A DNA stretch of 64,000 nt from Schizochytrium sp. TIO01. Its lineage: Eukaryota; Protista; Bigyra: Labyrinthulomycetes. The first letter of the stretch is position 1. Each line of letters begins with the position of its first letter. Shown here one piece after another: positions 21,642 through 42,200 of this stretch. The stretch lies in the NCBI GenBank assembly GCA_004764695.1, contig SMSO01000031.1, positions 2,704,436 to 2,768,435 of the forward strand, written 5' to 3'. Position numbers and translations under genes: made by a program. Under the pieces are notes generated by a model. The model made no database searches. It was not told where the DNA came from and saw only the letters and a list, made by a program, of their open reading frames with translations.

Positions 21642-24600
21642 TTAGACAATCTGCATTTCAATATCTTCTTGGTTGTTTTGCATTCGAGAATGCTCTTGGT
21701 TCGTCTTTTCTACAGAAACGGCACCTCCTATCGAGGTTGTCTCACTTCTCTTTGCGGCTCGTCGAGATATGACTGAAGTTGGTCGATACGGCGGACCCCT
21801 AGTTTTGTCACCTCTTGTACTACTCTTCGACAAAACTTTAGATGGTCCAGACTCATATTCGACGCGGTTGTCATTCTGCACATTGATAACTGAGGATGAT
21901 GTTTCCTCAATGGACTTGACGGAATCAGCCACAGATGTATCCGCGTGGGAACCCGAGGACAACTTGGGTGGAGTAAGTTCCGCATGATACCGTGAAAGTA
22001 CTGAAGAACTTCGTCGAACCCGGAGAGATGAAAGCTTCTCATTTATCGGCGTGGTTATGTGTCCAATTGGTTTGGGGGGCTCTGCCGCCTGAAGTAGAGT
22101 CATGCCTGGATTATCTAATTCAACTTTCTCCGTCGTTTGATTTACATAAACATCCACACCATGACGAAAGTGCATGTGGTCTTTCAAAGCTTTACACCAC
22201 CGCACCTGCTCCTCAGGTGATGTTGCAAAGGTCAAGGACTGCAGCTTTTCTGTGTGCTTGCGATCCCAAAACTTAATCGTTACTAACTTGGAGGCAGACC
22301 CCTGGACTTCGGCAACACGAGACAGTTTTATAGAGCGAAGTTTTCCAGCATAATGATGAGCGCCATCTTTGGCTTTCACCATTGTCTCAAAAATAGCCAG
22401 CTCGTCTCTTTCCGGAAATAACGTGCCATAAACACTGCTTTTGTCGACCTCAAGACGGACCCAGCCTTCGCAAGCTACACGATAACCTACTGCGCCGGAT
22501 AAAGTACCAACAATAAGGCCTTGGACTCCCGATACAGAGGTTACCGAGGTACCAGAGGAAGAGCATGTCGATACACTTGGTTCTTCGTCAATAACCATGC
22601 CTGGGAGGCTACTTGCAATGCTGTCCGTGGACACCCCACTCTGAGGGCTCTTTACAGATTGAGGAGAAGACATTAATTTGTACAGAAGACCTGTAGATTT
22701 TGACGCATTTGGTGAAGCGATGGATGCCAGCTCAATGACAACGCGTTCATCCTTGTTAGGCTTCGTGTTATTCTGTACAGAACGTCCACATTGTAAACGT
22801 GCGCCGGTACTCTCCGCAATAGCTTCAGCCCACTCCATAGCGGCATGCTGCGTGTCGCACATGAACTCGACACGTTGAAGACCCATGGAGCGGTCACGAG
22901 GCTGGTTTCGAGCATAGCGATGACGCACGTGCGGGTAGTCTAGAGCATCAACTGCTTCCTCATCAAGAGAAGAACGCGTGCTCATACCGTCTTCGATATC
23001 AGCATACCCATGTTGAGCTTCCCGCTCTTGCAGGCGATACAGTAAGTCAAATCGCCACCCCCCATGTTTTGCTGATTTCTTCCCTTTAACCAAGACAGCC
23101 TCTACATGGCGTAAGTTAAGTCGGCCAAGCTCTTGTGGCCTTAGCAGGTGAGATTTGGAGTTTCCCTCTGACCATGCTTCAGTATCATTGTTATAGTAAA
23201 ATATATCAAGACCTTGTTTTGAAGCGTACCAGTGTTGCCAAATTTGTTGACCATTATAACCATTCTCAGAACGCTTCCATAACCAACCGAAGGGGAATCC
23301 TTTCTTTGCATTCTGCATGGAAGATAATTTAAGTGGGTTCAAACTTGGACCAAAACGAGCACTGTTGTTCATAAGCAATTGAAGATTTGTTTCGTCACGT
23401 ATTTGCCTATACTTGTGACGAGCATAGCCAACCAAGGCGCTCGTTAAACAACATGTGAAAAGAAGACCAAATATGAAGCCTGGCCAAAATACACTCTTCT
23501 TCACGATCTGAGTGATGGTATTAGTGGCGCCACTCGTGTCGTCGTCTGAAGAATCTGCCATGTTTGATATTGGGATCCACTGTGTAGGTATGCAAGTCCC
23601 TTGAGATGTCATACGTGCGTCCCCACTACACTCTGTACATGCCTCTCCGGAGTACCCAGCTTGGCAAACACAGCGCCCTAGCCCTGTGTGACATACCCCG
23701 TGCCCTGAACAATTCAAAGGACACCACAAAACAGCTTCGGGTAAAACGCAGTCTGATGGGCAACAACCTTTATCTGTGCAGCGTTCTCCAACTTCGCAGA
23801 CGTCGTTGCCACAATAACCGACAGCCAAAGTCGTGGCACTAGACACGTTGAGAACAGACTTAAGAACAGTTGTCCAGGTGCTCTGATTCGAGATTCGAAG
23901 CCAAGGCATCATACTCGATGGAGCAAGCTCAACTTTTGCGTTGACAGTCAGGATATCGCCAGATAATGATCCTTCATTGCTGAGAATCCGTCTCTCCTTA
24001 GTAGTTGTGGTACTCACTTCAGCTGAGATGAGCGACCACGACACATTTCGTGGCATATTTGTTGTTAATTCCTCGATAAGAGATACTTCAACATCCAAAC
24101 GTTGCTGGTCTTCGCGAAGCGACGCCTCGAGAGTACTTGAATACAAGCCAATAATGCTAACAGAAGCAGAACAGGAGCTGCCAGTTCCGTCGCATATACC
24201 ACAACGATCTAGCAGTCCGCTCAAGCAGCACAAACCTTCAGCATCGAGCAAAGTTTCGCAGCATTTGCCCTGAGCATCAATTGTAATCCCAGCGCCATTG
24301 CAAGTTCCACATGCATCGATACTGCCACTTGCGCAGCAGCTTCCTTCAAAATCAAGTACGCCAGTCGAACAGCATGTACCTTGAGCAGTTAATGTGGCAC
24401 TTGACAAATCACAGCAACCACCGTTGATGTCCAGTACTTGTTCATCCCCTATACATATAGTTTCGTTAGTAGTTTCAGAGCAATCTTCGCCGGACCAGCC
24501 TTTATCACAAACACAAGTTGAAGCAGCCGCATTGTCACATCTCCCATGAGGACCACAGTTGGTTTGACATGTTTCCACACAGCTCGAAGAACAAGTTTGT

Positions 24601-27600
24601 ACAGCGTACGGCTTTGTCAAATTTGCGCAAGCAAGGTCAGCGGTAACTTCTCCATAGCGATTTACGCACAGAACATCTCGTTCTTGCTGCATTAAGGAGC
24701 AAGAACCAACAATATCAACAGTTGTTGCTGTGCAATTCCTCCATGCACCGATACTCCAATAATACCAGACACCAATTGATCTGTAAGGCAATTGGCTAGT
24801 GGAAGATATCACCGTTCCAGGAACACATGCTTGCGTTAAATTTGGGCGACTTGTGGAGCTACAAGTAGAAGATGATTCACCTGTTGAATATGTAATACAT
24901 TCTGCGCTTCGCTGTGCTATATTTGTCGTGCGGTCGCAAACCCAGTCACTGACTGACCAAACATCTGTACACAAAGAAGTAGACAGAATATCTGATGAGA
25001 GTGTTGATACGCTATCGCATTTTGGTGTTCCTAGTAGATAGCCTGAAGCTCTCTCAAAGCACATATTGGGCGCGCTACGATACCATACAGGAGAGCATGA
25101 ATTTGACGATGCTCCCGTCACGACGCTCATGAAACGCATTGTGGCGTCTAAGCATCCGGTGCTACAAATTTGTGTTGTTTCAGGAGTTGCACTGCTACAG
25201 CGAGATGTACTAACTATAGAGCTACCTGCATCAATACAGTTTACAGTTCTAGTTCGTTCAGTACCACAAATTTGAGAAGCACAGAAAGCAGCTTGATCAA
25301 GATCTTCACCTAAGCTCCATGAACTTACATTCCAGTGAGTGGAAAGGCTACTGCACTCTTCTACCTGTTCAGAGGTACAAGGAATTTTCGATACAGGAAG
25401 GGGTGAAAATTTAAGGCACTTAGAAATATCATGCTCAATTTCCATCCAAGCATAGCTTTCGCTCCCATAGGATGCAAAGGCAGCTCCAATCCCGTAACCA
25501 ACGCAACGAACATTTCTATTTTGCTGAGGTTCTGATGAGCAATCACAGTCATTTGAACTGATGGATTCAAAATGATACGGTAAGACAACCTCAATTTGGT
25601 CTGACTGTGTTGTAGTCTGAGTGTCTGCCCCTATGACTACCTGTAGATTCCCAAGACCTGGTTCAGTTCGTTCATCTACTGCCCACTGGTATAAAACTTG
25701 TTTCTCATCTGAGCTCGAGCTAGAACCTTGCAATTTTTCCAGTGTAGTTGAGATTACTGTGGTAGATGTTTCGTTTAAGCTGTTTGCCACATTTTCAAAA
25801 GAGAGGCGGACTGGTGTTGAGCCACCTCCCGGAAGGTAGCCCTTGACAGTGATGATTACAAGGTGCTCATAGTAGCCTCCTTTAATGAAAGGAGCCAAAA
25901 CTGGAGCTACTGGACTAATAAATGTCACATCTAGAACATTGAGATATGTACGTATTGTTGTTGTTGCGCCGTCATTGTCAGTTACAGCAAGAACAAAGGC
26001 ATACAGACCAACAACAGGCTCAGTTACGCGAACGATTGAGGTGTTGCTACCAACCAGAGCAACACTCTCTGCAGCCTCTACTGAGCCATCAACAGAAGCA
26101 AGCGACCAACGATAGCTTACAATCGATCCACCTGAGTCAATATCATAAGATGCTCTGCCATCGAGTTGTGCTGGGTAGCTTTCAAGACTCACCGTTGCAT
26201 TTGGAGCCACGGCTACTGGGGCAGTATTGACAACAACTGTCACCTCATCAGAATTTGTACACCCATAAGCTCCTGTGACTGTAAGTCGAAAAATATATTC
26301 CCCGGCGACAGTCATTCCAAGCACCCCAGTTGTTCCATTAGTCGGCGAGGTGAGTTGCACACGGCCTGATTCAAGTGTAGGATGAGACACAACTTCCCAC
26401 GAATACTTGATTGCATTCTTTGAAGCAGATGCATACAATTGCGTATATGTCCTTGGTAGAGTCACAGAGTGTCGAGGTGAGGACCCTGCGGCATCTGCTG
26501 CCGCAGTTGGGCCTTCATTGACATCTAGCCTAGCAGCTGAAGATCTGTATGCACCAGCTACATTGGTGGCAATGAAGGCATAGTAGCCTTCATTCGAATT
26601 ATCCGGATCAGCAATTTTGAATATAGGATCTGTGGTTTGCCACGCTGCAGTTGAAGTGAATATTGAACTAGCCTCAGAGTATGTTGAACTAAAGTACCAA
26701 GCATAATGGATTGGAGATGTCCCAGAAATATTCACCTCTTGTTCAAATACATTTCCTGGGCATGCAGTCCGCAAAGTGTCAGGCCAGGTACTCGCATCTT
26801 CTAAAGTCGGAACCTTTGTCACATTAACGTCAATTGCCACTGAACTGGTCATGCCCAGACTATTGCTGACTACACAATAATAGGAACCTGCGGCTGAATT
26901 ATGAATATCATTAAGAAGCAATATACATGGTACATTTGCTTCCGTACAATTCGAAGGAGTTTGACGATACGCGTCACCATCAATAATCACAGCTTGTGTT
27001 ATATCGGATGACTCTTCATACTTGTACCATTGAAATGTCAAAGGCTCTAGTCCAGAAGCTACAACGCTAAGTGAAAGATCGTCACCTGGATTTGTCTCAA
27101 CGCTAGTGTTTGTGGCTTTAGGTTCTTGCTCTGTGATTCGTGGTGAATCGAAGACTCCGAGACTAGCCCATCTTGACTGTGCGCAGTCTGCTTCGTTGCA
27201 GGCATTGCATGAATATAAACCCTCGTCCACATTACTAGAGTTTATGATAGTCATCACAATGTCACTAAGCCCAGCGTTGGTTTGATAAGTTCCAATAGCA
27301 TCACTAAACATAGACGAGTTCCTCATTTCAATTGCTTCAATATCTGCGCCGAGGGACTCGGTGTAGTACCAAGTTACTGTGAAAGGTGGTGTTCCAGAAG
27401 TAAGCTCACATTGGAAGGAGCTATTATACGTAGGTAAGCGTGTCATGTCCTCAGGTGTACTAGCATTGATGATCGGAGGAAGAACAACAGTAACTTCAAG
27501 AGCTTCCGAAATAGCACCTTGAGGTTTCGCCGAATTTTTAACTCTACAGGTATAAGAACCAGTATGAGTAGTACTCACAGCATCCGTAATCAATAGCTGT

Positions 27601-30600
27601 GACGTGTAATCATCCTCGGAGCTAAGAGCGTAACTAGATGTCCCCGAAACGTTGTCTGTAGCTGCGTCTTCCAATACATCTAGTGCAGATCCGTCTTTAA
27701 GCCACGTGAATGTTAAAGGTGTTGAACCAGAACCTTTGCAAATCAATTGAGCCGTGCCACCCGTCAAAATACGACCATCAGTTGGCACCATCGTTACCGA
27801 GTCTATCTGTGCAGGTGCATTCACAGCAATTGTAATAGGAATAGACGTATCACTTCCAAGTCGATTGGAGACGCGTACGAAAATAGATCCTTCCTCACTG
27901 GGTGCGAATTTGAAACTTGGGGAATTCCCAGTCTGGCTTACAGCACCATTCAGGTACCATGTGTAATTTAAGGGCGCGATACCTGAAGCTAGAACTGTTA
28001 GATTTACCTGTTGCAACGGATCGACAGTCAATGAACCACCTTCAGCAATGGGTGACATACTTAAAATTGTAGGTGGATCGCGAACTGACAACTTTCCAAC
28101 AGTTTTAGAAGCTGAGCCAGCCGAATTGGTGGCATAGCATATATAGATTCCTTCATCATTCTGGCTCACATTGGTCAGAGCTAAAGTAAAACCGGTTTGG
28201 CCGGATACAATAGTACTACTTGTTGAAGAGGAGCTGGATTTATGCCTCCAGGTGACGGACTTAACAGCAGGATCCGCAGTTACATTGCACGAAAAGGATA
28301 CGTTTGCGCCAGGGTCTACAGTTTTGGTCACTTCGCTGGAAATAATTACGGGGGGATCATTTACTGTTACGCTTACAAAGTCGCTCGATACATTTCCAAG
28401 ATAATTTTCGACGGAAAGTAAATAAACCCCTTGCTCTGATTCTTTAATGTCTTGAATCTGTAGAATGCTTTCAAAATAGGCCAGTGATGTTACATTTTCT
28501 TGCATCACCACATCTGAGCCACCAACCCCTCGACGATACCACTTGTAAGTCATTGGAGGCGCTCCTGATACTGTGCACGAGAGTGTTGCCGTCTTGGACG
28601 GATCAGCTGTTACATTGATTGGCTGGTTAATGATTTCTGGTGCTCGCGCAATGTGAAGGTTGGCAGCATCACTTAGCACACCTGTCACGGAATTCAGATG
28701 ATTTGTTGCTCGGCAGTCATAACTTCCTTCATCCGCAGTCGTAACATTGAGCAGTACTAGCGTGCTGAGGGTGGCACTAGCACTGTCAATGTCTATCCCA
28801 TCTTTTCGCCACTGATACGACATTGGCGTTGCGCCAGCCACTACTACAGTAAAACTAACATTCGAATTCGGCTCAGCAAAAACGTCCAAAGGACTCAAAA
28901 CAATAGTGGGCGGGTCATTCACGTCAAGACGCATGGCACTTGATATTGCCTCCCCTATGTCACTTAAAACTTGGCAATAGTAGTTTCCCTCATCGCTTGT
29001 TGCTACATTGGAGATTACCAACTGACTGCTGGTATCATCTGAAGTCACCGCTCCTTTCTCAACTTCCGTGAGATTCCCAGAGTCATTGTCACCATCTTGA
29101 AGCCATGTGAAAGAAAGGGGACCAGTTCCATTAGCCTCGCACTTTAGTGTTATCGTGCCACCAGGATCAACTTTCTTAGTTGTGTTGGAGGTAGGGGAAA
29201 CTATTTGAGGAGGATCATTCACGGTTAGCATAACATTCACAGACTGAGTAACATTCAGATAATTGTACACAGTTACCGAATAAAGTCCCTCATTTACTTC
29301 TTCTGCTGCTTCAAATGTAAGGTTGGCCAGTGTATAATTATTTTCACTTATATAATCACCGTCCTTCATCCACAGATATGCCAGAGGCCTTGCTCCAATT
29401 GCCTCTACAGTAAACACTGCTCGCTCTCCCGGATTTACAGTTAGAGATTGAGGCTGGGTTATGATAATCGGAGGTGTGTTGACAACAATCTCGAGACTCT
29501 CACTTTCCGCTGATCCTGCTCCATTAGTGGCAACGCATGTATAATCACCAGCATGCTGCGTTGCAGTAATATTAGTGAAAACGTGAGTTTGCGCTTCAGA
29601 CACAACAACACCATTCAGCTCAATTGCATAAGTAACATTTTCTCCAACCGAGTCGCATGCAAGTGTAAAGTTTTCAGTTGAACTTTCATTTACACCGTTT
29701 TCTAAAACGCTCGCGGGGCTTACAGAGATTGTTACATTCGATGGAATATCCATGATATCTAGATATGTCGCATTAGAGGTGGCATTGTTGACCATATTTC
29801 CTACTATACATCGGTAGTTTCCCTGATCTGCCTCTGTCAAGTTATTAATATTGAGCTTGAAGTATGTTGCATCAATCTCGTTTCCAGAAGTCGCAGCTGC
29901 TCTAGAGTATTGTGTCCATGTAGTTGAGCCTTCGACCTGTCTCTCCCAGTATACTTCCATAGGAAAGGAGCCTGTAGCCGAGCACAAAAGTGACGTATTC
30001 AGGCCTGGTACACCTATTGTTGGCTTTGGATCAGATGCAATAACCACTGGATTATAGACATTAACGAATGCTGTGTTGCTCCTCACCGATGATACCTTAT
30101 TGGAGGCAATACATGTATAGTTTCCTTGATCTGTTTCTGCAACACTTGAGTATCTTAGAACAGCATCAGTTGACGTTAAAGTCGTGTTTCCAAACATCCA
30201 TCTATACGTAATGGGAGTGGATCCAGACGCAGTACAATTCAGCACTATATTTTCTCCAGGAATTAAATCAAGGTTTGTTAGGTTTTGGTCTATCGTAGGG
30301 GCAAATAAAACTTCAATAGACTTTGTTGCACATGCTGCTAGTCCTAAGCTGTCCGTAACTCGAAGACTGTATTCGAAAGTCCCGGGAACACCTAGGCTAC
30401 TGATCTTTGTAGTTGCGGAGTTTGGAGAAGAAATTTGACCTGCACTTGACGAAGCTCCACTAGGACTATCTACCAGAGTCCACAAGTATGAAGATATTGT
30501 TGAGCCATATAGTGCCTTTGAAGCAGATCCTGTCAGCTCAACTTGACTAGCTGGGTATGCCACACTCGTGGTGGAGTTTCCAACATCAATTTGAGGTAGA

Positions 30601-32318
30601 CCAGCGTCTACATACACGAGCTGAGTTCCAATGACGACGGACGTGTCAGTGGAAGCACTAGCCTCAAACACGTAGCGACCTCTCTGGCTCAATGTTAACG
30701 GAAGAAGATATCCACCATCTACTGATTCCGAACTGGGGAGATCTGACGGAATTCGAGCTACTTCTGTCCAGCTTACAGTCTGGCTCCGCCAAGACTCCCC
30801 AAGATCTAATAGAAAGATATGTTCTACAGTCAAAGTAGCATTTGTTCCAGTTAGTAGCTCACTTGTCGAAGGACCCGCAGTAAGACTAAAGTTACACATG
30901 GGAGTAACATATAGCTCTTCACTACTTAAATCGAAATTGTCTGGGCAATTACCATCGAGCCCGACAATCCACTCATATTCGTTTCCTGAGCTGGATGCCG
31001 AAAGTGTGACTGATGCATCACTCAAATCCAACGATGCCAAAGAATCTGCCAGAGCTTTTGCTGAAGCTGTGACGGGGACTATAGTGGACGAATTTGAGTT
31101 TTCTAGCATTATTTGGAAGCTGCCATCGAGCAAAGAAAGACCAACTGTTGTGGTGACGGTTTTAAGTGTTAGCCCAGGTGTCGCTGAGCTAGATAGCCAC
31201 GGTGTGAGCAAGGGCATGTCTCCAGCTTCGCCGAATGTCACTTTCCATGTCCAACCGCTGGAAGACTTTGTTACCACAAGCTGAAGGCCAATATCGGTTA
31301 GACTACGCAAAGCAGCTTGCACTTGATTAGCTGATGAACTTAGATTAAGCGAAGTGGAATTTTCGTCCTCAAAGCCAAGAGAAAAAGAGCCTGTAAAACT
31401 TGAACGGTTGTTTGCTGTTGCATATGTAGATCCAATACTCGCACCAAGTACGATAGTTTCTGCCGAAGCTCCAATATCAGAGCCACCAAGGTTTGTTGAA
31501 TTCACACGTGCCTGCGCACCAACCACCCCTTCAGCTAGAACAACTCTGTATACATAGCCCGCGGGTTCGCTGGTGACTGTACGAACCACACTTTCTACTG
31601 AGTCTTCGCCAAGAGCATTTTCAAAAGCTGTTCTTAAAGCATTTGCATTTGCATTGTAATTTAGTGTAGTTTTTGGAAGAGACCAAGAACAACCCCAAAC
31701 TGTTCCGGTTGGGCCGTTTATTGTTGGGCCTGTATAATCCTGGTCCAGCTGAATGACTGAAGAATAGCAACCATCACATTCACTAAATGAAACGCGATAT
31801 GTCTGCCGATCTTGCCCAGAAACAGATGAATTTTTCGATACACGAACAGGGTATCCTTCATATACGCCAGCTTCCTGCCATACTTGAGTTGTGTCTTCAT
31901 TATTAGACACAAATACACTGATTTGATTCGCGCTATTTGGTACTGGAGCATAATATACTGTGCCTGGCAATTGTACATCGAATTGGCAAAATTCAAGGTC
32001 CCATGTGCCACGAGATGCATTGATAGATATATCGATTACCTGGTGACTCCAAAGACGTACTTCTTGAATTTCTTTCACATTTTCAGTAGCACTACCCTCG
32101 GCTTTTATACGATATGTATTTGTTGGTCTCTGAATAATACGTTGCGCAAATAAACTCCCATTATAAGTTTCGTCAGAACAGTATTCGGCTGAGTATGAGC
32201 TCGCAAATGTTCGATCAATGCAAGAACTCATAAGGACGATGGTGAATAAACTCAAAATGATGAATAACGATGAGTTATGCTGGCCCAGAATTACTCTTCT
32301 CATATTTGATTTCTTCAT
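21642..32318 (-). CDS. Giant type-I transmembrane receptor/adhesin: signal peptide, 3 N-terminal repeats, PKD-like, 13 Ig-like, 2 PKD-like, TSP1-like, EGF, DxxGxCC repeats, EGF, TM, 2 PH-like domains (3558 aa)
   Basis: Uninterrupted 10.7-kb ORF. Hydrophobic leader LFIILSLFTIVLMSSC; 13 repeats of PP-I...C/V-x-A-x-G-x-x-P...W...D/E-x-G-x-Y-x-C (~30300-26520); EGF motifs CGPHGRC...CVCDKGWSGEDC and CSGHGVC...CVCQAGYSGEAC; TM VFWPGFIFGLLFTCCLTSALVGYA followed by RHKYR. Confidence 0.92.
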   Translation of the reverse strand: MKKSNMRRVILGQHNSSLFIILSLFTIVLMSSCIDRTFASSYSAEYCSDETYNGSLFAQRIIQRPTNTYRIKAEGSATENVKEIQEVRLWSHQVIDISINASRGTWDLEFCQFDVQLPGTVYYAPVPNSANQISVFVSNNEDTTQVWQEAGVYEGYPVRVSKNSSVSGQDRQTYRVSFSECDGCYSSVIQLDQDYTGPTINGPTGTVWGCSWSLPKTTLNYNANANALRTAFENALGEDSVESVVRTVTSEPAGYVYRVVLAEGVVGAQARVNSTNLGGSDIGASAETIVLGASIGSTYATANNRSSFTGSFSLGFEDENSTSLNLSSSANQVQAALRSLTDIGLQLVVTKSSSGWTWKVTFGEAGDMPLLTPWLSSSATPGLTLKTVTTTVGLSLLDGSFQIMLENSNSSTIVPVTASAKALADSLASLDLSDASVTLSASSSGNEYEWIVGLDGNCPDNFDLSSEELYVTPMCNFSLTAGPSTSELLTGTNATLTVEHIFLLDLGESWRSQTVSWTEVARIPSDLPSSESVDGGYLLPLTLSQRGRYVFEASASTDTSVVIGTQLVYVDAGLPQIDVGNSTTSVAYPASQVELTGSASKALYGSTISSYLWTLVDSPSGASSSAGQISSPNSATTKISSLGVPGTFEYSLRVTDSLGLAACATKSIEVLFAPTIDQNLTNLDLIPGENIVLNCTASGSTPITYRWMFGNTTLTSTDAVLRYSSVAETDQGNYTCIASNKVSSVRSNTAFVNVYNPVVIASDPKPTIGVPGLNTSLLCSATGSFPMEVYWERQVEGSTTWTQYSRAAATSGNEIDATYFKLNINNLTEADQGNYRCIVGNMVNNATSNATYLDIMDIPSNVTISVSPASVLENGVNESSTENFTLACDSVGENVTYAIELNGVVVSEAQTHVFTNITATQHAGDYTCVATNGAGSAESESLEIVVNTPPIIITQPQSLTVNPGERAVFTVEAIGARPLAYLWMKDGDYISENNYTLANLTFEAAEEVNEGLYSVTVYNYLNVTQSVNVMLTVNDPPQIVSPTSNTTKKVDPGGTITLKCEANGTGPLSFTWLQDGDNDSGNLTEVEKGAVTSDDTSSQLVISNVATSDEGNYYCQVLSDIGEAISSAMRLDVNDPPTIVLSPLDVFAEPNSNVSFTVVVAGATPMSYQWRKDGIDIDSASATLSTLVLLNVTTADEGSYDCRATNHLNSVTGVLSDAANLHIARAPEIINQPINVTADPSKTATLSCTVSGAPPMTYKWYRRGVGGSDVVMQENVTSLAYFESILQIQDIKESEQGVYLLSVENYLGNVSSDFVSVTVNDPPVIISSEVTKTVDPGANVSFSCNVTADPAVKSVTWRHKSSSSSTSSTIVSGQTGFTLALTNVSQNDEGIYICYATNSAGSASKTVGKLSVRDPPTILSMSPIAEGGSLTVDPLQQVNLTVLASGIAPLNYTWYLNGAVSQTGNSPSFKFAPSEEGSIFVRVSNRLGSDTSIPITIAVNAPAQIDSVTMVPTDGRILTGGTAQLICKGSGSTPLTFTWLKDGSALDVLEDAATDNVSGTSSYALSSEDDYTSQLLITDAVSTTHTGSYTCRVKNSAKPQGAISEALEVTVVLPPIINASTPEDMTRLPTYNSSFQCELTSGTPPFTVTWYYTESLGADIEAIEMRNSSMFSDAIGTYQTNAGLSDIVMTIINSSNVDEGLYSCNACNEADCAQSRWASLGVFDSPRITEQEPKATNTSVETNPGDDLSLSVVASGLEPLTFQWYKYEESSDITQAVIIDGDAYRQTPSNCTEANVPCILLLNDIHNSAAGSYYCVVSNSLGMTSSVAIDVNVTKVPTLEDASTWPDTLRTACPGNVFEQEVNISGTSPIHYAWYFSSTYSEASSIFTSTAAWQTTDPIFKIADPDNSNEGYYAFIATNVAGAYRSSAARLDVNEGPTAAADAAGSSPRHSVTLPRTYTQLYASASKNAIKYSWEVVSHPTLESGRVQLTSPTNGTTGVLGMTVAGEYIFRLTVTGAYGCTNSDEVTVVVNTAPVAVAPNATVSLESYPAQLDGRASYDIDSGGSIVSYRWSLASVDGSVEAAESVALVGSNTSIVRVTEPVVGLYAFVLAVTDNDGATTTIRTYLNVLDVTFISPVAPVLAPFIKGGYYEHLVIITVKGYLPGGGSTPVRLSFENVANSLNETSTTVISTTLEKLQGSSSSSDEKQVLYQWAVDERTEPGLGNLQVVIGADTQTTTQSDQIEVVLPYHFESISSNDCDCSSEPQQNRNVRCVGYGIGAAFASYGSESYAWMEIEHDISKCLKFSPLPVSKIPCTSEQVEECSSLSTHWNVSSWSLGEDLDQAAFCASQICGTERTRTVNCIDAGSSIVSTSRCSSATPETTQICSTGCLDATMRFMSVVTGASSNSCSPVWYRSAPNMCFERASGYLLGTPKCDSVSTLSSDILSTSLCTDVWSVSDWVCDRTTNIAQRSAECITYSTGESSSTCSSTSRPNLTQACVPGTVISSTSQLPYRSIGVWYYWSIGAWRNCTATTVDIVGSCSLMQQERDVLCVNRYGEVTADLACANLTKPYAVQTCSSSCVETCQTNCGPHGRCDNAAASTCVCDKGWSGEDCSETTNETICIGDEQVLDINGGCCDLSSATLTAQGTCCSTGVLDFEGSCCASGSIDACGTCNGAGITIDAQGKCCETLLDAEGLCCLSGLLDRCGICDGTGSSCSASVSIIGLYSSTLEASLREDQQRLDVEVSLIEELTTNMPRNVSWSLISAEVSTTTTKERRILSNEGSLSGDILTVNAKVELAPSSMMPWLRISNQSTWTTVLKSVLNVSSATTLAVGYCGNDVCEVGERCTDKGCCPSDCVLPEAVLWCPLNCSGHGVCHTGLGRCVCQAGYSGEACTECSGDARMTSQGTCIPTQWIPISNMADSSDDDTSGATNTITQIVKKSVFWPGFIFGLLFTCCLTSALVGYARHKYRQIRDETNLQLLMNNSARFGPSLNPLKLSSMQNAKKGFPFGWLWKRSENGYNGQQIWQHWYASKQGLDIFYYNNDTEAWSEGNSKSHLLRPQELGRLNLRHVEAVLVKGKKSAKHGGWRFDLLYRLQEREAQHGYADIEDGMSTRSSLDEEAVDALDYPHVRHRYARNQPRDRSMGLQRVEFMCDTQHAAMEWAEAIAESTGARLQCGRSVQNNTKPNKDERVVIELASIASPNASKSTGLLYKLMSSPQSVKSPQSGVSTDSIASSLPGMVIDEEPSVSTCSSSGTSVTSVSGVQGLIVGTLSGAVGYRVACEGWVRLEVDKSSVYGTLFPERDELAIFETMVKAKDGAHHYAGKLRSIKLSRVAEVQGSASKLVTIKFWDRKHTEKLQSLTFATSPEEQVRWCKALKDHMHFRHGVDVYVNQTTEKVELDNPGMTLLQAAEPPKPIGHITTPINEKLSSLRVRRSSSVLSRYHAELTPPKLSSGSHADTSVADSVKSIEETSSSVINVQNDNRVEYESGPSKVLSKSSTRGDKTRGPPYRPTSVISRRAAKRSETTSIGGAVSVEKTNQEHSRMQNNQEDIEMQIV

Positions 32319-33241
32319 TGTGTATTAGCTTTCGCTATGTAGCAGAGCCAAAGTTAAGCGAACTAATCTCACGGTTGTGTTTTAAAGTAAGGTTTGGCTC
32401 CCTGGGCCAGCAAGCCTTAGGAGAGAGCTTCGAGCTCCCTTACGAAGCTGTTTTCCTTTGAGTTTCGAAGGCTCGTTGGGTATCCAAGCAATCGAAATAT
32501 GCATTCACGCTACGTGCAGCGTGGCAGCAGTCAGCCGGCCTAACTCTACCCGCTGAAAGAACTTGTACCTTTTAGATTTGCTGGGCTCTCTCGGGGAGTC
32601 CCATTGACCGCCAAATTAGCATAAATAGCACAATCTAATATAGTTACTCCATCAGCTAGTGAATACTCTACATCCTCTCACTTGTCCAGTAGACCTGCTG
32701 CTGACTTAAAATTTAAAAATAATAAAAATTAAAAACTAATTTGCAACAATGAACATTGCCACTTCAACTTTCTTTCAAGAATTATTTTTTTGATCAGGCT
32801 TCGGAACTTTTCTTCAATAAACTCTGGCTTGTTTGCTTATTATCAAAATTATAGAGTTCTGTGACTGTCAGCGTGGTAGCACAGGGCACAGTTGGAGCGC
32901 TTTCGGGACTCAGAACATATGACGGTTACAAGGTGTGCACTCCGCTCGTAACGATAGGTTGGCCTAGCTATGAGCATTACAAGTGCAAATGAGTCTTTGA
33001 AATGGGAGAATTTGTTACAGAAGTTCACCGGACGAGAGCGTCTCAATGAAGTAGAGCAGGCAGTAGAGAGAAATGAGGAAAATTGGGATTGCAGATCTCT
33101 TCCTGTAAATTGAGTTTCGAGTTTTCGAGACTTTTTAACCTCAAGCTACTGACCGCGTGCAATATAGAGGGGTAATGGATTTAATTAAAAAGAACAAATT
33201 TTAGAGAAAATATAACTGATTGATTTTGACTATTTTTTTAA

Positions 33242-36200
33242 CTACTCTAGCCCAGAAAATGCTTGAGCGTCATGCTCATCAAAGTCTTCCATTGTATTAC
33301 AATTGTTCGCCGCGTATAGAAGTTTCTCATAACAGACCTCCTTACTTGAGTATTCTGGTAGTCCAAGTGTGAAAAAACATGTCTGACTCTGCGGTAGCAT
33401 ACCATCAGAAGATGCCATAGCTTTACCATCTGCTTCCTCATCATTGTCTTGCTTTCGTATCAGAGGGATGATCTTGAAGCTCATGGGAAATTTATCCACA
33501 GATGAAGGAAGGCGGGAACGTGCACAAACAAAATTGACGAACTTGGACCTTTCTTCCTGAGTCATGTCTTCTAAAGCACGCCAAAAGTTAACAACGTGAG
33601 GAGCCTCTGGGTCTACATCCTCGTAGATTGTGGCACGTTTCAGTAATTCAATATCAATCTCTGGTGCACCACAAATAAGCTTTTCCAGCTCCTCTGGAGT
33701 AAATAAAATGAAGTTTCTGGTGGGCAAGATCTCTTCTAAGCCTTGCATAAAAGTTGTAACAGGAGCAGCAGCAGTTAGAACAGATTGTCGAACAATCTCT
33801 TCGACAACAGTGAACCGAGCTTCAAACGGAATCTTACTAGGTTTCCCGTGATGTGTAATCACTGACCCGGCCGGTAAATTATGTTTCGCATCACCTAACC
33901 GATCAAGTAAAAGCTCGCTCCATGCGGCGTCTTCATCATCCCATTGCTCGCGAGAAAGAGACTCAATCTGCCTGAGAGAGCGGGTGGTAAAACTATCAAT
34001 TTCATGGAGTTCGCGCCATCCAATAGGAAGTCCCACTAATGGTCTCCAAATAATATGTGCTAAACAAAGGCCAATATGAATACTATGTCTTGTCGCAACG
34101 CCTAATAGTCTTCCCAGAAATTTGATACATCGTTCACTTCCTGCCGCACCACTTGGCCATTTAGCCTCCCCATCTGACCTGCCTGAACATTTTCTACTTG
34201 TAAAGGTGCCAGAAGAGATTTTATTGCCAGTATTCTGTACTTCTTCATCCTCTTCGTCTTCCAATTGATGGCGGAGAGGTGTAAAAACCATCCTATCTGC
34301 ATTTGCAAGAGCACCATCTGCAGCATTAGGACAGGGTACAAGAATTTGGAGAGGGCCTGCTGCTTCTTCCTCGATTGCAATTTGAAAAACTGCGCGGTAA
34401 GGACCTCCATGGTCATCAACTCCTTCGCTTTCAAATTTAACAAAGAAACAGCGTTGCTGAGTTGCATCTTGAATGTGAGAGTATGCACGACGAAGCTTTC
34501 GAGCAGGCCAGCTTTCCATCCCTGTTTTGACCATGATTTGCCCAAACACGGACGTCTGCAAACGATCATGCTCTTCCAGAGCTGCAAGACGCTGGTCTCC
34601 TGCAATAATTCGATTCACTCGGACTGATGGAAAATCTGGGGGTGCATCGTATTCGTCAGCAGCCGGAATGGTAGGAGTAGTAGTCCGCGCAATGCAAGCA
34701 TTCCAGTATTCGAGTTTCGTCCTGGTAAATATTAGCGAACGGCCGTAGGCTAAGAGGCCTGCAACTTGCATTTTGCGGCACGCTAATCTACTCTGCTCCC
34801 CATCGCCACTCCGGTGATCAGAGGCAAATACTATCTGTCCTGGGTCCGAGACAGTGGTCTCTAAATTTACAAGCTCGAATATTTTTCGGATGCGAATGTT
34901 GATAGTCAACAATATAATAAATCGAGCAATGAGGCGCTGAGGGCCAAGGCCTATCAATCGGCGCATGGTTTGGCTTGCTGTTTCGGCATGCTGCATCTCT
35001 TTCACTAAGCTAATAAGCTGCAAGTGCTCAGGCTCGCAAGCGTATCTATCACACAGAACATTCACAACTAGTACAAGCTCCCGATCTAGGGCATCTGTCC
35101 ATACATCATTACGTCCCTGAAGAGCATTGACCAAGTCGTCAGGTGTAAACGTGGAAGGGAGCATGCTATGAGCTTCTTTCATAGTTTGTAATTCCTTATG
35201 TTGATCATCTTCAAGCCATACCTTTTTGTCTTTGACAAGTGAGCGCAACTCAGCAGGAGGCCAAAATAAAGCTTCGTCTGAGCCGTCAACGCAGTACCAT
35301 AAGGCGCCATTTCTGGCTCCTAATATTGTCACTGGCCCCCGGGGCGAGTTCAAGCGATCGCCTACTTGAACATTCCCAAGACTAGCAACCGAGGCAGCTG
35401 CACAAGCACCTGCGCTAATATGAATGTGCACTGGAATACGACCTAACGACCACACAGTTCGCATTGAGCCAATTGAGTCATTTGTATTCTCCCAAACTGA
35501 AAACAACTCATCTCTCCACGTAAGCGGGATCTCGTCCGCCGAAGGACGAGGTGCGAGAATCTCACGGAACATGTTGACGGTTTGAGAATATTCGAAAACC
35601 ATCGAGGCCTCTGGTTCTTCATTGTACTCAAGAGATCGCGTCTTTTCCATCGTTATTTTATCATGAACCTTTGACATTCCAAAACAGGGATACAATTTGA
35701 TGTCCTCAGATGGGATCCGTTTTCTGCGACCCAATCGACACTTTTGGCGTAGTTGGTCGTAAGCTAGTCCAAGATCAACAATGACCTGCTTATCTCCACT
35801 CTGGTAATCCTGGAAATCCTTGAAAAAGTAAAGGCGTCCGCGGTCCATGTCAAGAAGAACGCCTACAACGTCGTTTACAGCATAGAAAGAACCATACAGT
35901 TGCTCGCCATCAGGGCTGTGGGTAGCACGATAGTTAACAAAACCAAAACCGTCACCCCAGCCTTCGCCGCGTGCTTCATTACCTGGCCGCAGGCGTGGCG
36001 AGTCATCTTGCGACGGGTGTCGATCAGTCACTCCAATAAGGGTGCTACCCCATTGCATACCCATCACCCGGGCCTCCCAGTAGTGCATCCCCCGAGAGTA
36101 GCCCTCTGCTCCCAGCACATGAGACCTTTTCCCAGCATCTGGGCCAACGCCAACGTACTCAGCACTTAGACAGTCCGCAGAGACATGAATTCCTGGGCCT

Positions 36201-39200
36201 GCAGTAGTAGGGTCCAATCTCACAAGTTGGTGTGAGGAGAACGCAAACTTGCCTTGCATGTCAAATAAGTTATCAGCCTGCGATTCTTGTTGTTGATTCT
36301 TTGACTCGTCAGAAGCGTCTTTTAAAGAAAATTTAGTAAAGTTCTCAGGAGGCACTGTTGTGGCTTTAGTTGTTGAAGATGCAATTCCCTTTTCGAAAAA
36401 CTCATACTTAACTTCACTCGCAGAACGAGATGTCACTTTACACCACCCTTCCAAAAGTCCATCAACCCAGTTTCCTTCAAAAACGGTCCCAGAAGCCTCT
36501 TTAAGAATGCCTGGACCAGATCGACGGCCGAGCTTCCAAGAACCGTCAAATCGGACAAGAGAACCTGATTCACTTCGGTTAGTGTACCTCTTCAGTTCAG
36601 AAAAGTGCACTGTGCCTTGTCCGTGTTTCAAGCCAAGGCAAAGGATAGAGACATTCGCGCGAGCTGATATTGCAATTGCGGGAAAAAGAGCATTATCAAA
36701 AAGACACTCGGTACCTCGCCGCAAGGCACTGCGATCGCACAAAGCAACTTCTTTGTCGTTAATGAATATAGACACGCGTCCATGGTCTGAATCTAGTTCC
36801 AGCGATATTTTATCCCCGTCACGGAGAGGGTCTTTCAGCAATGCTTTATTGCGCCCTTTAAACCATGACAACCCACTCGACGAGATGCCCCAAGAATGTT
36901 CCGTTGCGCCGAGATGGTCGCGTAGCGGTGTACCCTTTGCACAAAGTCCAAACGAGACGTCATCCCGCTGCAATGACCCTGCTGACCCTTTCACTTGGAA
37001 TTCCCACATGTAAACACCACTGTTGGGTTCCCAAACTCCTTCAGCATCGAGGGTAAACAATGCAGCCTCGACATCACCGCCCTGACTATTATTTGATTGA
37101 TCAGGGTTTGGAGTGGTGCAGATAGCACAACACGAATGGTCTAGTTGATTTAAGAAAGTACAGGCCGGACATGCCCAGGTAGCAGGCTCCATTGCATGAG
37201 GCATACTATCGTTCTCCAGGGATTGCTCTTCAGCCTCGTCGTTGTTCGAGCTACTTTGCAAAACTGGATACCAACGGCCAGTTTCAAGAATAACTGTACT
37301 CCACGTTGAAACTGTAGGCCGCTGGTCAAGCACAAATGGAGGAAACGTACTTTGCAGATGCAAGATGTCGCATGTTGCTCGGATAAGTTGCCCTTCTTCA
37401 TCAAGACTGAGGTAAGCTGGAGCAGAACGAGCGACCGCCCGCATCGTGGGTGCGTCTTCAGAAAGCACATGCCAGTGCGGGAGCTTTCTTGAAGTTTTCC
37501 AAGTCCCCTCCAACTCGCCATTGGATTCATGGCCCTCAAACATTAAGTTTGAAAGCCAACGACGGCTTTCGTTCTCAGCAAGAACCACTTGAGTGACGTA
37601 AATCTCAAAGTTATGTGAGGAAGCATCTATATGGCCTTCAACCTTACACCAGACATTTTTATCATGTTCAGTACACTCAAAGTGGCCCACAAGTTTGCAA
37701 TCGCCAGTCAAGCGAAGATACAGGTGCATAGGAAGGTGAGCAGTTTGGAAATCCATAGGTACCGCGACTTGCCTCAATAGGGATATTTCCTCGAGATCCC
37801 AAAGGATTACCCCTGAGAACTTTGTTTTAGAAATAAGGTAATGAAGCGATGGTTCTATCCGTTCGTATAGAGCTGTCTGCAACTTTAGGGACCCAGTGTC
37901 TGATTCAGATTGTTTTGAAAGACAACTTTCATGATCTTCTGAAAACGATGTTATCCGAGCACCAGAGCGAAGTATACCTACATGCTTGTGATGCAGTGCC
38001 TCAATGAGCATATGCACAGATGACAATATCTCCTTCGGGGGTTTAACATGGGGAGAATCGTTGCATTCAGTATCTGTATTCAAAACATTATTGCTCAAAG
38101 AATTTGTATCATGGGTGAAGTCCCAGTAAGAATAAAGTTCACTCAGGGCAAGGATGGGCTCCGCCGTTTCACACTCCATACCGGGTCTCTCTGTTTTTAT
38201 GGTTTGCACATTGCTACCAAGAGATAGAAGGTGCCTACTTATCTCCTTCGCCTGCTCCCCACTCATGGCACGTTTCCAAAGGCAAAGTCGACCAATTGAA
38301 CCATCAAATGAAGCTCCGACTGGGCTGCCAACTTCACGAATACCAAGAGCGCTTTGCGATGACTTGGAACAGATGGAGCCCCGAAGGACATCATTTTCAT
38401 AAGCAAGGATGTGAACAATTTCCTGAGTCTGGATGTTTGACCTCAACCCTGGTCTGGGCTTTGAACGAGCAGTGCGCTGATAAAGGCTCTTGGGTGTTGT
38501 GCGCTCTTTACTATGCGATATTTTATGAAATTGAAGATAGGCTTCTACACCCATCGTGTTCATCTGGAACACCCCATCTGACAAATAACTCTCAACATCA
38601 TCTTCGTCATGCGTCCAATTGGATTCTGCCTCTGCGTTGTCATCTCCCACTTCACTTTCGTCTTCAGTGCTATATTCTTCACCCTCAGCGTCCAAAGTGG
38701 AATAACTGTCTTTCTTGTATCCCTTTAGATTTTTCTGGCTTCCACCTTTTTCATCTGTTTTAGGCATGCAACCCATATGATGATGCAAAAACATCTTATT
38801 CATCGCATCGGTTTCTGGATAGTCTGCACATACTAGAGTGAGTTTCGTCCAAGGTTGCACTTCTTCGCCTTCTTTAGGTGCTGGCAATGTGAACCCAAAG
38901 CTGGAAATCTTCCCATCGCTGAAACGAATACCAAGCTTATTGGACGTTAAAATAATCTGCAATGAAGATGAACTAGATGAATCACCAAGAATAATGCGCG
39001 GTTCTGCTCCTAATTCAGAGTGCTGATTATCCTTTCCAGGTGGGTGCCGGATCCAAAAACTAGCTGTCCAGGGAGGTTGGAGTGAATCCAAGGCTTCTCC
39101 ATTCACGTCTCTGAGCTCCATAAATCCAGACTGAGTCAGCTCTAATTGCGAGGATTTCATTGCCGTAGTTTCAGAAGGCAACAATGCCTTATACTGTTCG

Positions 39201-42200
39201 ACTTTAGCGACAAATTGAAGTAGTTCTTTACAAAAGAGCGAAGGCCCGGGGCTTGCCCCATCCCTTCGTCGTAAAAGACGATTAATCAGAGCAAGTAATC
39301 GAGACCATGGGAGAGCCTGTATCATAGTGTATAAACTGTTAATACGAGTGGCACCATTTTCAATGGATGCTGCCGCATCCAGGAAATCGGAGAGCATACT
39401 AAGTGCAGATATTTTAATACGAACAGAGGGCGAACGAAGAGCCAAGAGCCAGGTCGTGAAAAGGGTCAAATGTAACTCACTTCCTAAAGGAGCCACGCTC
39501 AGAAGCTGGCGCGTTGCCCAGTCTACAAACCATAGCATTGACTCACTGCTTTCCACTGCAGAGAATGAATCATCGCGAACCTGCTGAGTATCAGCTGAAA
39601 ACTCTGCTGATGCAGCCCTTCTTAGAGTTTGCTTCACGCATAATAGAAGCTCCGCGACGAAACTTTTACTTCGTGATATACACGTGGACGAGAATTCATA
39701 AATACTTTTAGGAATATTCCAAAGGCAAGCCTTTGCATCGCCTGTAATAGAACGTAGGCAATCATGTGCATAAAGGGGGAATTTTTGGAAGCTTTCTGAA
39801 ACAAGAAGTTGAACTAACTTTGCACGCTGTGTTTCGTTTATGAAAGCGTTAAAGGAGCCTCCTTCGACGATCAGGATACGAAGGATAACTACTCTAGCTT
39901 GCAAAACGCTGAGAACCTCTGCTAAATAACGAAACTCCTCATAAAGGTCTGCTAGAGAATACTTCTCTAGTAAATGACAATAAGATGCACGTGAGTCAGC
40001 ACTTGGGCCCCAGTGTCGCTGAGAGGCGCGCTGTAGCTCTGAGTGCATCCTGTTCTTTTCGTTTCGATACTTGGACCCAGATCGGCGTCCTCCAATATGT
40101 ACCTTTCCTTCCAAGCCTTGCCCACGGTTGTCCCAACCTGTATACGATGAAATTGAGCTAGCAGAGGCGAGTTCGTTCTCGTCAACATTACGATCTAGGT
40201 TATCCATTTCAAGGTAGTCATCTTCTCCTGGACAGACATGAGGTGTTTCTTCCTTGTTTCCAGATGATGCAGAGATAGCAGCAGCAGCAGCAGCAGCAGC
40301 AGTAGGAGCTGGATTCTCAGAACCCCTGCTATCTGTACCGCCAGATTCATTTTGTGCATCGTCTGTAACCCCACTGGTGATTTCACTTCGTGACACCTCC
40401 TCTGGTTCATCATCGATGCTATAACTAGGTTCCTCTGCCTCTTCTTCACTTTGTTCATCTTGACTCCTTGACATTGCTAGTGCAATTCGCTCATCAAGCA
40501 AGTCACCATGTGTGCAAATATATGAAATCGCTGCTGTGACATCGAGACCATTTCGCTGCAATGCAAACTCTGCCCAGCGGCGGGGGAAACCCATGTCCAT
40601 TAATGTTAATACACTTTCTGCAGGAACTGCGACTCGCCTCGACGAATTGCTATTTTCTCCAGCCATACGTCTGCTCCGACGAGGTGCAAGGTCAGCTGCA
40701 GCGCCGGATTGTGCTTGATGGTTAGAAGAAAGCTCTATACTATCAAGTGCGATTTCATCTGCGTTAGATTGAATCCCGAGTTCATCAAGAGATTGAACAC
40801 TTTCTGCGGTCTTACTTCCATCCTGCATTGTTTGGGACCCTTGCATTGAATTCCGGCCTCGAGAGAGTTCGTCGAGTAGAATGGTGAGTCGCTCTGACAA
40901 AACATTCAAATCTGGGATGCGGAAAAGTGGAATTTTCCTAAAAGCAAGATCGAGCATTACTGAGAGGTTTCTCTCTGGAAAATAACTCAATGTTGCAGAC
41001 GCTGAGTCTATACTTTGCAAGGGTCTGTCTTCTAGATTTTTAGTCTTCTGCGATTTTTGAAAGCTCAAATTAGCCAAGGCTTGAATTCCCAACAGCTGAG
41101 CTAAGGCTTTTTGATAACACAAGGAAGTCTTAACTTGACTTTCCAGTTTGGGGCGAAGAACATAGTCATTTTCAGCATCTTGAATCTTAACCCATGCAGC
41201 TTGAGAGAGGGTTGCATCTTGTTTATCTTCAACGTTATTTTCATGAAAGCTTTCTAATTGAATCCATAGACCCACTCTCTGCGAGGCAGTAACCACAAGG
41301 GAAGACTTCTTCTCTTCTGGATCGAAAAGTGGGTTCAAATTTCCAATGACTGCAGCTGCATCGTCAGGAGCATCCCGTACATTGATTGTCTTAGGGGCTG
41401 TCGAAAATAGTTCGAAGTCGCGTCTCCAAGAGCTTGTTAGCCATGATCCATAAGGCAGTGACTCTTGCGAAAAATGCTGTAAAGCCTTCAACAAACCACT
41501 ATCTGTATTTAGACGAACAGCATTTATATCTTGGCGCAGATAGACATGGTCTGCACCGATATGGATAAGCTGTTTATCAAAATTGATGGTCTTAGTTGAG
41601 CGATTCTCAAAGCGTCGCCAAACCTCAAGTTTTTCTAAATCACTGAGATCTTTTGAACCACCGCTCTGTGTCCATGCAAGCTGATAGAATGCTGAAGAAG
41701 TAGTATTCATTTCAATGATGAAGTGCATAGGGTCAAAAGCATGGACTGGGGCACCAGGCATAAGTTTCAATACTGTTCCTGAAATCACTGCCAAAGCAGC
41801 GTTACAAAAAGCAAATGTTTTGGCTTGCCCCCCATCTAGCTCGCGCCCTGAAGCGTGAGAATCTATCGTTGCCGTATCACCTTCATCCAGGCCGCTGCTA
41901 ACCGAGGTGGCGGGAGTTGAAGCTTCGCCCTCTCCTGCAGATGTAAGAATCGCTGAGCCTGCATCAATAGCATGCTCAAGCAGACTATGAATTGTGCTCT
42001 TCCAATGCGAGAACCTTTGAAGTTTTCTCAATGTCCGAATAGCTTCAATGCTTTGTAGAAGTTTTGACTCCTGCAGAGATGAATTACAGCTTGCATAAAA
42101 GCCTCCTGCCGCGATCTCAAGTAAGAACTCGCCTATATTATGAACCTCGTTATCCTCCAGATGGACTTCGCTAGGATTTATCAAAGGTAGCATGCCGCGA

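Follow-up and report, generated by a model that had tools for sequence, protein, structure and literature searches.

A giant immunoglobulin-domain membrane protein with a tandem PH tail in a thraustochytrid, a candidate adhesion or recognition receptor

A stretch of 64,000 nucleotides from Schizochytrium sp. TIO01 (contig SMSO01000031.1, positions 2,704,436 to 2,768,435; hereafter the window) carries on its minus strand, at 21642..32318, a gene for a protein of 3,558 amino acids (aa). Herein, we analyzed this gene computationally. The protein combines a large array of immunoglobulin (Ig)-like domains with a cytoplasmic tail of two PH-fold domains, and we consider it, with a probability of roughly 0.55, to be a conserved, thraustochytrid-restricted giant type I plasma-membrane glycoprotein, most likely acting as a cell-surface adhesion or recognition receptor. 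This reading is supported by the intact open reading frame (ORF), the topology, the N-glycosylation sequons, the Pfam domains, the PH folds and the colinear orthologues. A paralogue with the same head-PKD-Ig arrangement, the small number of strain differences and the tiling of the 5' end by sequence contigs lend it further support.

Gene structure and predicted topology

The gene is intact. It is a stop-free ORF of 10.7 kb with an ATG start and 3,558 codons. Short low-depth contigs of four transcriptome-sized runs from three studies tiled window positions 27000-32600, about 5.3 kb at the 5' end, and the contigs over 27000-32900 had no joints and no introns. Such contigs show presence only, and the expression level is not derivable from their depth.

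Hydropathy analysis of the whole protein revealed only two strong hydrophobic segments. The first, at residues 16-35, follows a basic N-terminus and was read, heuristically, as the core of a probable signal peptide; the orthologues P0070 and P0073 likewise begin with short hydrophobic leaders. The second, at residues 2943-2967, aligns with hydrophobic segments of all orthologues and is directly followed by basic residues. Given the leader, the single transmembrane (TM) helix and the basic residues behind it, a type I topology is predicted, with about 2,900 residues outside and a tail of 591 aa (residues 2968-3558) inside. The ectodomain contained 63 N-glycosylation sequons, compared with 36.5 +/- 5.3 expected from composition-preserving shuffles, while the tail contained 5 compared with 4.3 in shuffles, indicating no enrichment there.

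The ectodomain strings together some 25 small modules, and the order along the protein is head, PKD, 13 Ig, two PKD, TSP1-like, EGF, Cys-rich, EGF, TM and PH-PH. The features are as follows (window coordinates, strand, residues and basis).

21642..32318 (-): complete single-exon coding sequence, 3,558 aa plus stop; ORF with ATG and without internal stop
32199..32318 (-): residues 1-40, probable signal peptide; basic N-terminus and hydrophobic core
30594..32198 (-): residues 41-575, family-specific head of 535 residues; AlphaFold2 (AF2) model
30309..30593 (-): residues 576-670, PKD domain 1 of the KIAA0319L/AAVR type; Pfam K319L-like_PKD, E 4.5e-12
26526..30308 (-): residues 671-1931, 13 tandem Ig units of the I-set/Ig_3 type; Pfam and a self-built hidden Markov model (HMM)
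25947..26525 (-): residues 1932-2124, PKD domains 2 and 3; best K319L-like_PKD stretch 1951-2030, PKD_4 at 2031-2124
25536..25946 (-): residues 2125-2261, poorly conserved domain after the PKDs; no Pfam match
24573..25535 (-): residues 2262-2582, Cys-rich region with TSP1-like repeats T0 (2262-2327, marginal), T1 (2328-2392), T2 (2438-2503, degenerate) and T3 (2518-2582); Pfam TSP1_ADAMTS (T3) and hhalign
24465..24572 (-): residues 2583-2618, EGF module 1; Pfam EGF_Teneurin 26.1 bits, EGF_2 22.9 bits
24153..24464 (-): residues 2619-2722, Cys-rich repeat block; sequence and orthologue alignment, no Pfam family
23814..24152 (-): residues 2723-2835, Cys-free juxtamembrane domain; no Pfam and no ESM Atlas match
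23493..23813 (-): residues 2836-2942, conserved CGN-x-VCE...CCP-x-DC motif, EGF module 2 (2866-2896) and a short acidic/Thr stalk; Pfam EGF_Teneurin 33.8 bits
23418..23492 (-): residues 2943-2967, single TM helix; hydropathy peak 1.9
22800..23306 (-): residues about 3005-3173, PH domain 1; AF2 predicted local distance difference test (pLDDT) 85-94 in the core, VIA-align
22155..22493 (-): residues about 3276-3388, PH-fold domain 2; AF2 pLDDT 80-93, VIA-align
21645..22154 (-): residues 3389-3558, disordered C-terminus; pLDDT below 50

A preliminary description, made from the letters of the window alone, had proposed a single stop-free ORF with a signal peptide, 13 tandem Ig-like domains, three PKD/KIAA0319-like domains, about three TSP1-like repeats, two EGF modules, one TM helix and a tail of ~590 aa with two PH-like domains. 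Hydropathy agreed with a signal peptide and a TM helix, and Pfam, the HMM and structural comparison reproduced the remaining elements, with the number of TSP1 repeats upheld only in part (see below).

Orthologues and host genome

The gene lies on a 9.8-Mb contig of a genome of 64.07 Mb in 37 contigs, and kinase domains in this genome are mostly uninterrupted, indicating an intron-poor eukaryote. The best named relative of the protein is Hondaea fermentalgiana GBG27547.1 (UniProt A0A2R5G923; P0002), which was automatically named "Neural cell adhesion molecule 1". The two proteins share 52% identity over residues 43-2293 and 33% both over the TSP region and from the TM helix to PH2, and are colinear through PH2. 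A flanking gene encodes a MOT1 molybdate transporter with 72% identity to Hondaea MOT1. Both Hondaea MOT1 and the Hondaea orthologue are on a contig recorded as 357,178 bp, which suggests that they share one contig and that the linkage between the two genes is conserved. Since the closest named relatives of both the receptor and its flanking gene are from Hondaea, the host is a thraustochytrid, in agreement with the labyrinthulomycete protist envisaged in the preliminary description. That description had also considered that the flanking genes might place the contig in Metazoa; this was not borne out, and the neighbors proved to be ordinary host genes.

Three colinear full-length orthologues with 35-54% identity were found, namely GBG27547.1, P0070 from a JGI metagenome and P0073 on contig JACKZZ010003250.1, the last encoded by a single 10.6-kb ORF (L012:3226-13863). 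All modules are kept in the same order in P0070 and P0073. Both EGF modules and most of the Cys-rich repeats are missing from the Hondaea gene model (residues 2583-2905 of the window protein) but present in the other orthologues; this gap could be an artefact of the gene model, with wrongly predicted introns as the likely cause, or a real loss. The best-conserved block was PKD2-3 (58, 54 and 39% identity among orthologues). The beta domain at the N-terminus of the head, the Cys-rich repeats, EGF2 and PH2 were likewise among the most conserved parts, and conservation was lowest in the post-PKD and juxtamembrane domains.

When the tail was searched with HMMER against 1.84 billion representative proteins, only 8 clusters were recovered. 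Besides this same protein in a different assembly and its Hondaea orthologue, they comprised two proteins of 3,378 and 3,545 residues and four short fragments. A metagenome scan with a four-sequence tail alignment found no relative. The gene is single copy and diverges slowly and evenly. Comparison with a second strain revealed 26 differences in 3,529 residues; as these are few and spread along the protein, hypervariability was rejected.

Cytoplasmic tail

The AF2 model of the tail, based on an alignment of tail relatives, contained two confident domains (pLDDT 80-94) and was otherwise disordered. Both domains consist of seven strands and a C-terminal helix, and the top Foldseek matches of the tail model all belonged to the PH superfold. 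With VIA-align, PH1 (tail residues 38-206) reached a Z score of 12.6 against PLEKHA7 and the split PH domain of PLCgamma2; it is interrupted by a disordered insert of ~50 residues with a conserved LD(Y/F)P-x-(V/I)-(K/R) motif. PH2 (tail residues 312-420) reached 13.8 against ARAP3, 13.0 against TAPP1 and 12.8-12.9 against FERM F3 lobes, and is preceded by an invariant G-x-x-S-G-x-x-G (tail columns G304, S307, G308 and G311). Pfam detected nothing in the tail of the window protein at E <= 1, PF00169 included, and PH2 had no Pfam match in any family member. At the position aligned with PH1, PF00169 (cut-off 25.1) scored 43.9 bits in P0073 and 28.3 bits in P0074.

Alignments revealed a conserved SSL(R/K)-x-RR-x-S motif downstream of PH2. 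At the C-terminus, an acidic run precedes a terminal hydrophobic-x-Val (window 21645-21659, -). Of the seven relatives whose C-terminus is complete, six have Val as the last residue, and the final tripeptides are QIV, QVV, FIV, EVV, SVV and DSV (including those of P0002, P0070, P0071, P0072 and P0074). Judged from its sequence, this end could be a candidate PDZ-type docking or endoplasmic reticulum export signal. The tail is unique within the genome, and neither Pfam nor the AF2 model revealed an enzymatic domain in it.

These data bear on a purely structural explanation, in which a glycosylated rod tethers wall scales, mucilage or the surface of the ectoplasmic net and the PH tail merely fixes this rod to the cortex. 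A surface-coat or matrix anchor of this kind fits a rod-like ectodomain array rich in N-glycosylation sequons and a tail free of enzymatic domains, and repeats of the head also occur in giant extracellular ORFs with IPT/TIG domains in the same genome. However, the conserved RR-x-S, LDYP and hydrophobic-x-Val motifs, together with two conserved PH domains, exceed the needs of a passive anchor, and the slow, even divergence of a single-copy gene also argues against it. We regard this explanation as unlikely.

Cys-rich region and juxtamembrane domain

Among the TSP1-like repeats, T3 (2521-2578) matched Pfam TSP1_ADAMTS with 25.2 bits (cut-off 23.8), and T3 of P0070 with 29 bits. Comparison of the orthologue alignments with hhalign gave probabilities of 95.7% for T1-T3, 73.8% for T1-T2, 48% for T2-T3 and 51% for T0-T1. 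At the sequence level, two TSP1-like repeats appear well supported and one or two degenerate, and just one (T3) is significant alone. Of the roughly three repeats proposed beforehand, T3 by Pfam and T1 by hhalign were retained, whereas the third was weaker (48-74%) and a fourth marginal.

Both EGF modules matched EGF_Teneurin. The Cys-rich block between them is built of G-x-CC...LD-x-x-G-x-CC units and two D-x-CG-x-C-x-G motifs, and is 51-54% identical to those of P0070 and P0073. Region 2836-2942, which holds EGF2, shares 59% identity with P0070 and 42% with P0073. Polycystin-1/REJ proteins carry a REJ domain and a GPS/GAIN cleavage module near the membrane. Neither REJ nor GPS was matched by Pfam in the window protein; in P0073, Pfam REJ scored 25.5 bits over the PKD2-3/post-PKD region, just at the cut-off of 25.

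Within the poorly conserved juxtamembrane domain, a dibasic RR near residue 2776 (about 2774-2777; window about 23990-24000, -) is conserved. The motif reads KERR in the window protein and QERR, NQRR and KR-M (the last in P0073) in the orthologues, and may be a candidate processing site. Cleavage at this site would free an ectodomain of ~2,775 residues as a shed adhesive, with the stub and the PH tail staying behind. The persistence of RR in an otherwise variable Cys-free domain beside the membrane is in line with such a precursor. Adhesins with TSP1 repeats occur in both stramenopiles and alveolates, and oomycete (Phytophthora) spores secrete TSP1-repeat adhesives, as cited in PMC3986615, which offers a precedent. 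However, not every orthologue has a complete furin-type motif at the dibasic site, and the juxtamembrane domain matched nothing in Pfam or the ESM Atlas, so that we judge shedding to be quite improbable as the main role.

Head and its paralogue

According to the AF2 model of residues 1-670 (mean pLDDT 68), the head contains a beta-rich domain, three beta-alpha-beta repeats (about 206-290, 310-393 and 398-454) and a beta-sandwich (about 469-570). It is 49-55% identical to that of Hondaea. The head had zero Pfam matches and zero PDB sequence matches at E <= 1, a word-indexed search with residues 1-670 gave no match among proteins of 368-1,172 aa, and in a metagenome scan with the head alignment, the P0073 contig was the only one recovered. 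A subdomain within residues 80-393 (window about 31140-32081) resembles a domain of mycobacteriophage Bxb1 (Z 13.6, root-mean-square deviation 1.8 Å, 22% identity over 98 aligned residues); the phage domain is common to tail-tip and capsid proteins of Bxb1.

A paralogue of the head was found on another contig of the same genome (L008:3157-6594, -; G000:C3, about 1736156-1739593). This protein of 1,145 aa has a signal peptide, a head with 50% identity, a K319L-type PKD, two Ig units, and five or six TM or hydrophobic segments. It thus carries a polytopic anchor where the receptor has a single TM helix and a PH tail. As the head-PKD-Ig module is mounted on two kinds of anchor, the head is suggested to be the functional (binding) unit.

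The beta-alpha-beta repeats of the head also recurred weakly (E 7e-9 to 9e-3) in two giant extracellular ORFs of this genome, one of 6,079 aa (L011; G000:C30:450000-459999) and the other of 16,277 aa (G000:C32:891908-919888). IPT/TIG domains, at least six of them, are also present in the 6,079-aa ORF. The lineage appears to use the repeat as an extracellular module that has so far gone unnamed.

In a feature search of the ESM Atlas, the nearest neighbors of the head were diatom Filamin/GEX2 N-terminal Ig-like clusters at 0.85, a sub-threshold score, as values below 0.9 are a lead only and shuffled sequences reach 0.8 in a third of cases by the tool's own figures. These neighbors would suit a gamete or cell-cell recognition protein comparable to GEX2 and other gamete-attachment proteins of the Ig superfamily (IgSF), acting only at a sexual or aggregative stage, and so would the very low contig depth in the RNA-like runs. 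The Atlas score is nevertheless too low to be more than a lead, Pfam matched neither filamin nor GEX2, and contig depth is no measure of expression. We hold this role to be very unlikely.

Ig array, PKD domains and comparison with known proteins

Pfam matched the array with both Ig_3 (373 bits, cut-off 30, E 6e-114) and I-set (327 bits, cut-off 23.7, E 1e-99), in 10 stretches each, and the self-built HMM delimited all 13 units at 50-91 bits, scores that are partly circular. The canonical Cys pair is present in 7 of the 13 units (1, 2, 3, 5, 8, 10 and 11). Units 6 and 12 have only the second Cys, and units 4, 7, 9 and 13 have none; the Trp and the D/E-x-G-x-Y motif are retained across nearly all units. 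K319L-like_PKD matched three stretches, with one PKD upstream and two downstream of the array. The model of PKD domain 1 aligned with AAVR PKDs at Z 11.5-11.9 and about 29% identity.

Ig_3 matched just three ORFs in the 64-Mb genome, a count that is a lower bound: the receptor, the 1,145-aa paralogue and a protein of 597 aa. In the 597-aa ORF (L009:2045-3838, +; G000:C36, about 4689544-4691337), a single Ig_3 domain follows an internal hydrophobic segment.

After the orthologues, the best matches were unnamed, apparently bacterial proteins and animal hemicentins, and large Ig/PKD arrays were abundant. Hemicentins were the strongest named non-orthologous matches (E about 1e-200), with 23-25% identity confined to the Ig array; this similarity reflects repeat number. 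When the Ig units were compared individually, units 4, 6, 7, 9, 12 and 13 scored higher against presumed bacterial Ig giants than against hemicentins, with the widest margin for units 4 and 6 (51-58 bits against the presumed bacterial P0052 and P0010, 22-24 bits against hemicentins). Several Cys-bearing units scored slightly higher against animal proteins, and the split follows the cysteines. This comparison covered a small set chosen by the first search, with "bacterial" assigned from Pfam combinations rather than taxonomy, and is a lead rather than a phylogeny. Going by sequence scores of this kind, part of the Ig array could be bacterial or mixed in origin. The protein had been called animal-style; the Ig/TSP1/EGF kit is indeed present, but nearly half of the Ig units fit the label less well, scoring better against the presumed bacterial giants.

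Ig/PKD surface giants attributed to marine bacteria (P0035-P0046) share the mix of I-set/Ig_3 with PKD and K319L-like PKD in precomputed Pfam lists; examples include Bacteroidales "immunoglobulin domain-containing" proteins and proteins with a gliding-motility-associated C-terminal domain. Unlike the receptor, P0035-P0046, P0052 and P0010 have no TSP1, EGF or PH domain in these lists, and the giants probably lack the eukaryotic layout of signal peptide, TM helix and cytoplasmic tail.

Hemicentin (fibulin-6) likewise has a long I-set array followed by TSP1 and then EGF, in the same overall order. It is a secreted protein with an N-terminal VWA domain, G2F, calcium-binding EGFs and a fibulin C-terminus, and has no TM helix and no PH domain. 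By contrast, the receptor has no Pfam match to VWA, G2F, calcium-binding EGF or fibulin, and possesses a TM helix and a cytoplasmic tail. NCAM consists of five Ig domains followed by two fibronectin type III (FN3) domains, whereas the receptor has no Pfam match to FN3, 13 Ig units and other flanking modules. We considered the name of the Hondaea protein to be a misnomer.

KIAA0319 and KIAA0319L (AAVR) resemble the receptor in their type I layout, in their K319L-type PKDs and in the Cys-rich segment that precedes a single TM helix. In AAVR, a MANSC domain accompanies five PKDs; Ig array and TSP1 repeats are lacking, and the short tail carries no PH domain. The receptor differs in having three K319L-type PKDs, no MANSC match and an inserted array of 13 Ig units. 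UNC5, apicomplexan TRAP/MIC2-type adhesins and the Phytophthora TSP1-repeat spore adhesives are surface proteins with TSP1 repeats, combined with Ig in UNC5, and the tails of the type I members of the UNC5/TRAP/MIC2 group link to intracellular machinery. The receptor lacks the ZU5, UPA and death domains, the VWA/I domain and the penultimate-Trp tail of this group and has a PH-PH tandem instead.

Despite the NCAM1 name and the high rank of hemicentins, an animal NCAM or hemicentin homologue acquired through contamination or recent metazoan transfer was excluded, because the defining modules (FN3, VWA, G2F, calcium-binding EGF and fibulin) were not found by Pfam, the low hemicentin identity is restricted to the Ig array and driven by repeat number, units 4, 6, 7, 9, 12 and 13 favor the presumed bacterial giants, and the gene stands among ordinary host genes of an intron-poor thraustochytrid genome, with its MOT1 neighbor closest to Hondaea and both Hondaea counterparts on contigs of identical recorded length.

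No characterized protein with such a domain order was found, as the preliminary description had supposed. Its further suggestion of an undescribed system held only in part: no member of the family has been characterized, but the full-length Hondaea protein and two more are already in databases. The family is thus sequenced and public yet uncharacterized, and one member is misnamed, with an NCAM1 label that misleads.

Proposed function

In the receptor reading, the distal head-PKD-Ig part would recognize a ligand outside the cell, for example a polysaccharide, the substratum or a second cell, with the long glycosylated Ig/PKD stalk carrying the distal binding head. The PH pair may anchor the receptor at the inner leaflet or link it to proteins of the cortex, and the RR-x-S site and the C-terminal hydrophobic-x-Val would be candidate signals for regulation and for trafficking or docking. 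An independently assembled protein with a role in adhesion, prey contact or the ectoplasmic net, as proposed beforehand, may be envisaged.

Several points weigh against a receptor. Phosphoinositide-binding PH domains bear the signature K-Xn-(K/R)-X-R across beta1-beta2. By sequence reading, neither PH1 nor PH2 has the canonical K...K/R-x-R: PH1 keeps K/R after beta1 (W-K-R-S) and has W-Q-H/Q-W in beta2, and PH2 has no basic pair. Because the beta2 basic residues are replaced by Gln/His, a protein partner seems likelier than high-affinity 3-phosphoinositide binding. No function could be assigned to the head, the post-PKD domain or the juxtamembrane domain. That the runs covering the 5' end are RNA is a guess only. 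A zoospore/vegetative proteome paper and its supplementary text do not mention Ig-type or PKD proteins. In addition, arrays of Ig, PKD, TSP1 and EGF are found in purely structural matrix proteins too.

A more far-reaching version is that thraustochytrids independently built a giant IgSF adhesion receptor with a new tandem-PH output, whose Ig/PKD block may derive partly from marine bacteria and which acts where the ectoplasmic net or the settling zoospore touches a substrate or a cell. We put this forward tentatively, as a scenario that is conceivable but doubtful. To our knowledge, no type I receptor with a PH-PH tail output has been characterized, and none was found in the literature, where we likewise met no report of Ig-type or PH-tailed receptors in thraustochytrids.

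Long canonical Ig arrays together with TSP1 and EGF are usually regarded as typical of the adhesion and guidance proteins of animals. Here, this animal-type adhesion kit occurs in a stramenopile, on a conserved single-copy gene, and both the PH-PH tail and the head are nearly absent elsewhere among the representative proteins searched. With only three Ig_3 ORFs in the genome, the gene offers a clean, testable case for such architectures arising outside animals. Thraustochytrids are ecologically and industrially important and genetically manipulable, and the protein is a concrete candidate for their poorly understood attachment and ectoplasmic-net biology. If it is indeed an independent tandem-PH adhesion receptor, it would provide a direct molecular handle on labyrinthulomycete attachment.

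Neighboring genes

Besides the MOT1 transporter, the genes around the receptor encode a HECT/SPRY/ZZ ligase, an amidohydrolase, an EF-hand protein and a GDI/REP homologue. The ligase gene is a single ORF of 5,761 aa at window 33242-50527 (-); its giant product, a HECT ubiquitin ligase, shows matches to ZZ, SPRY (several), UBA-like and MORN domains and is unrelated to the receptor.

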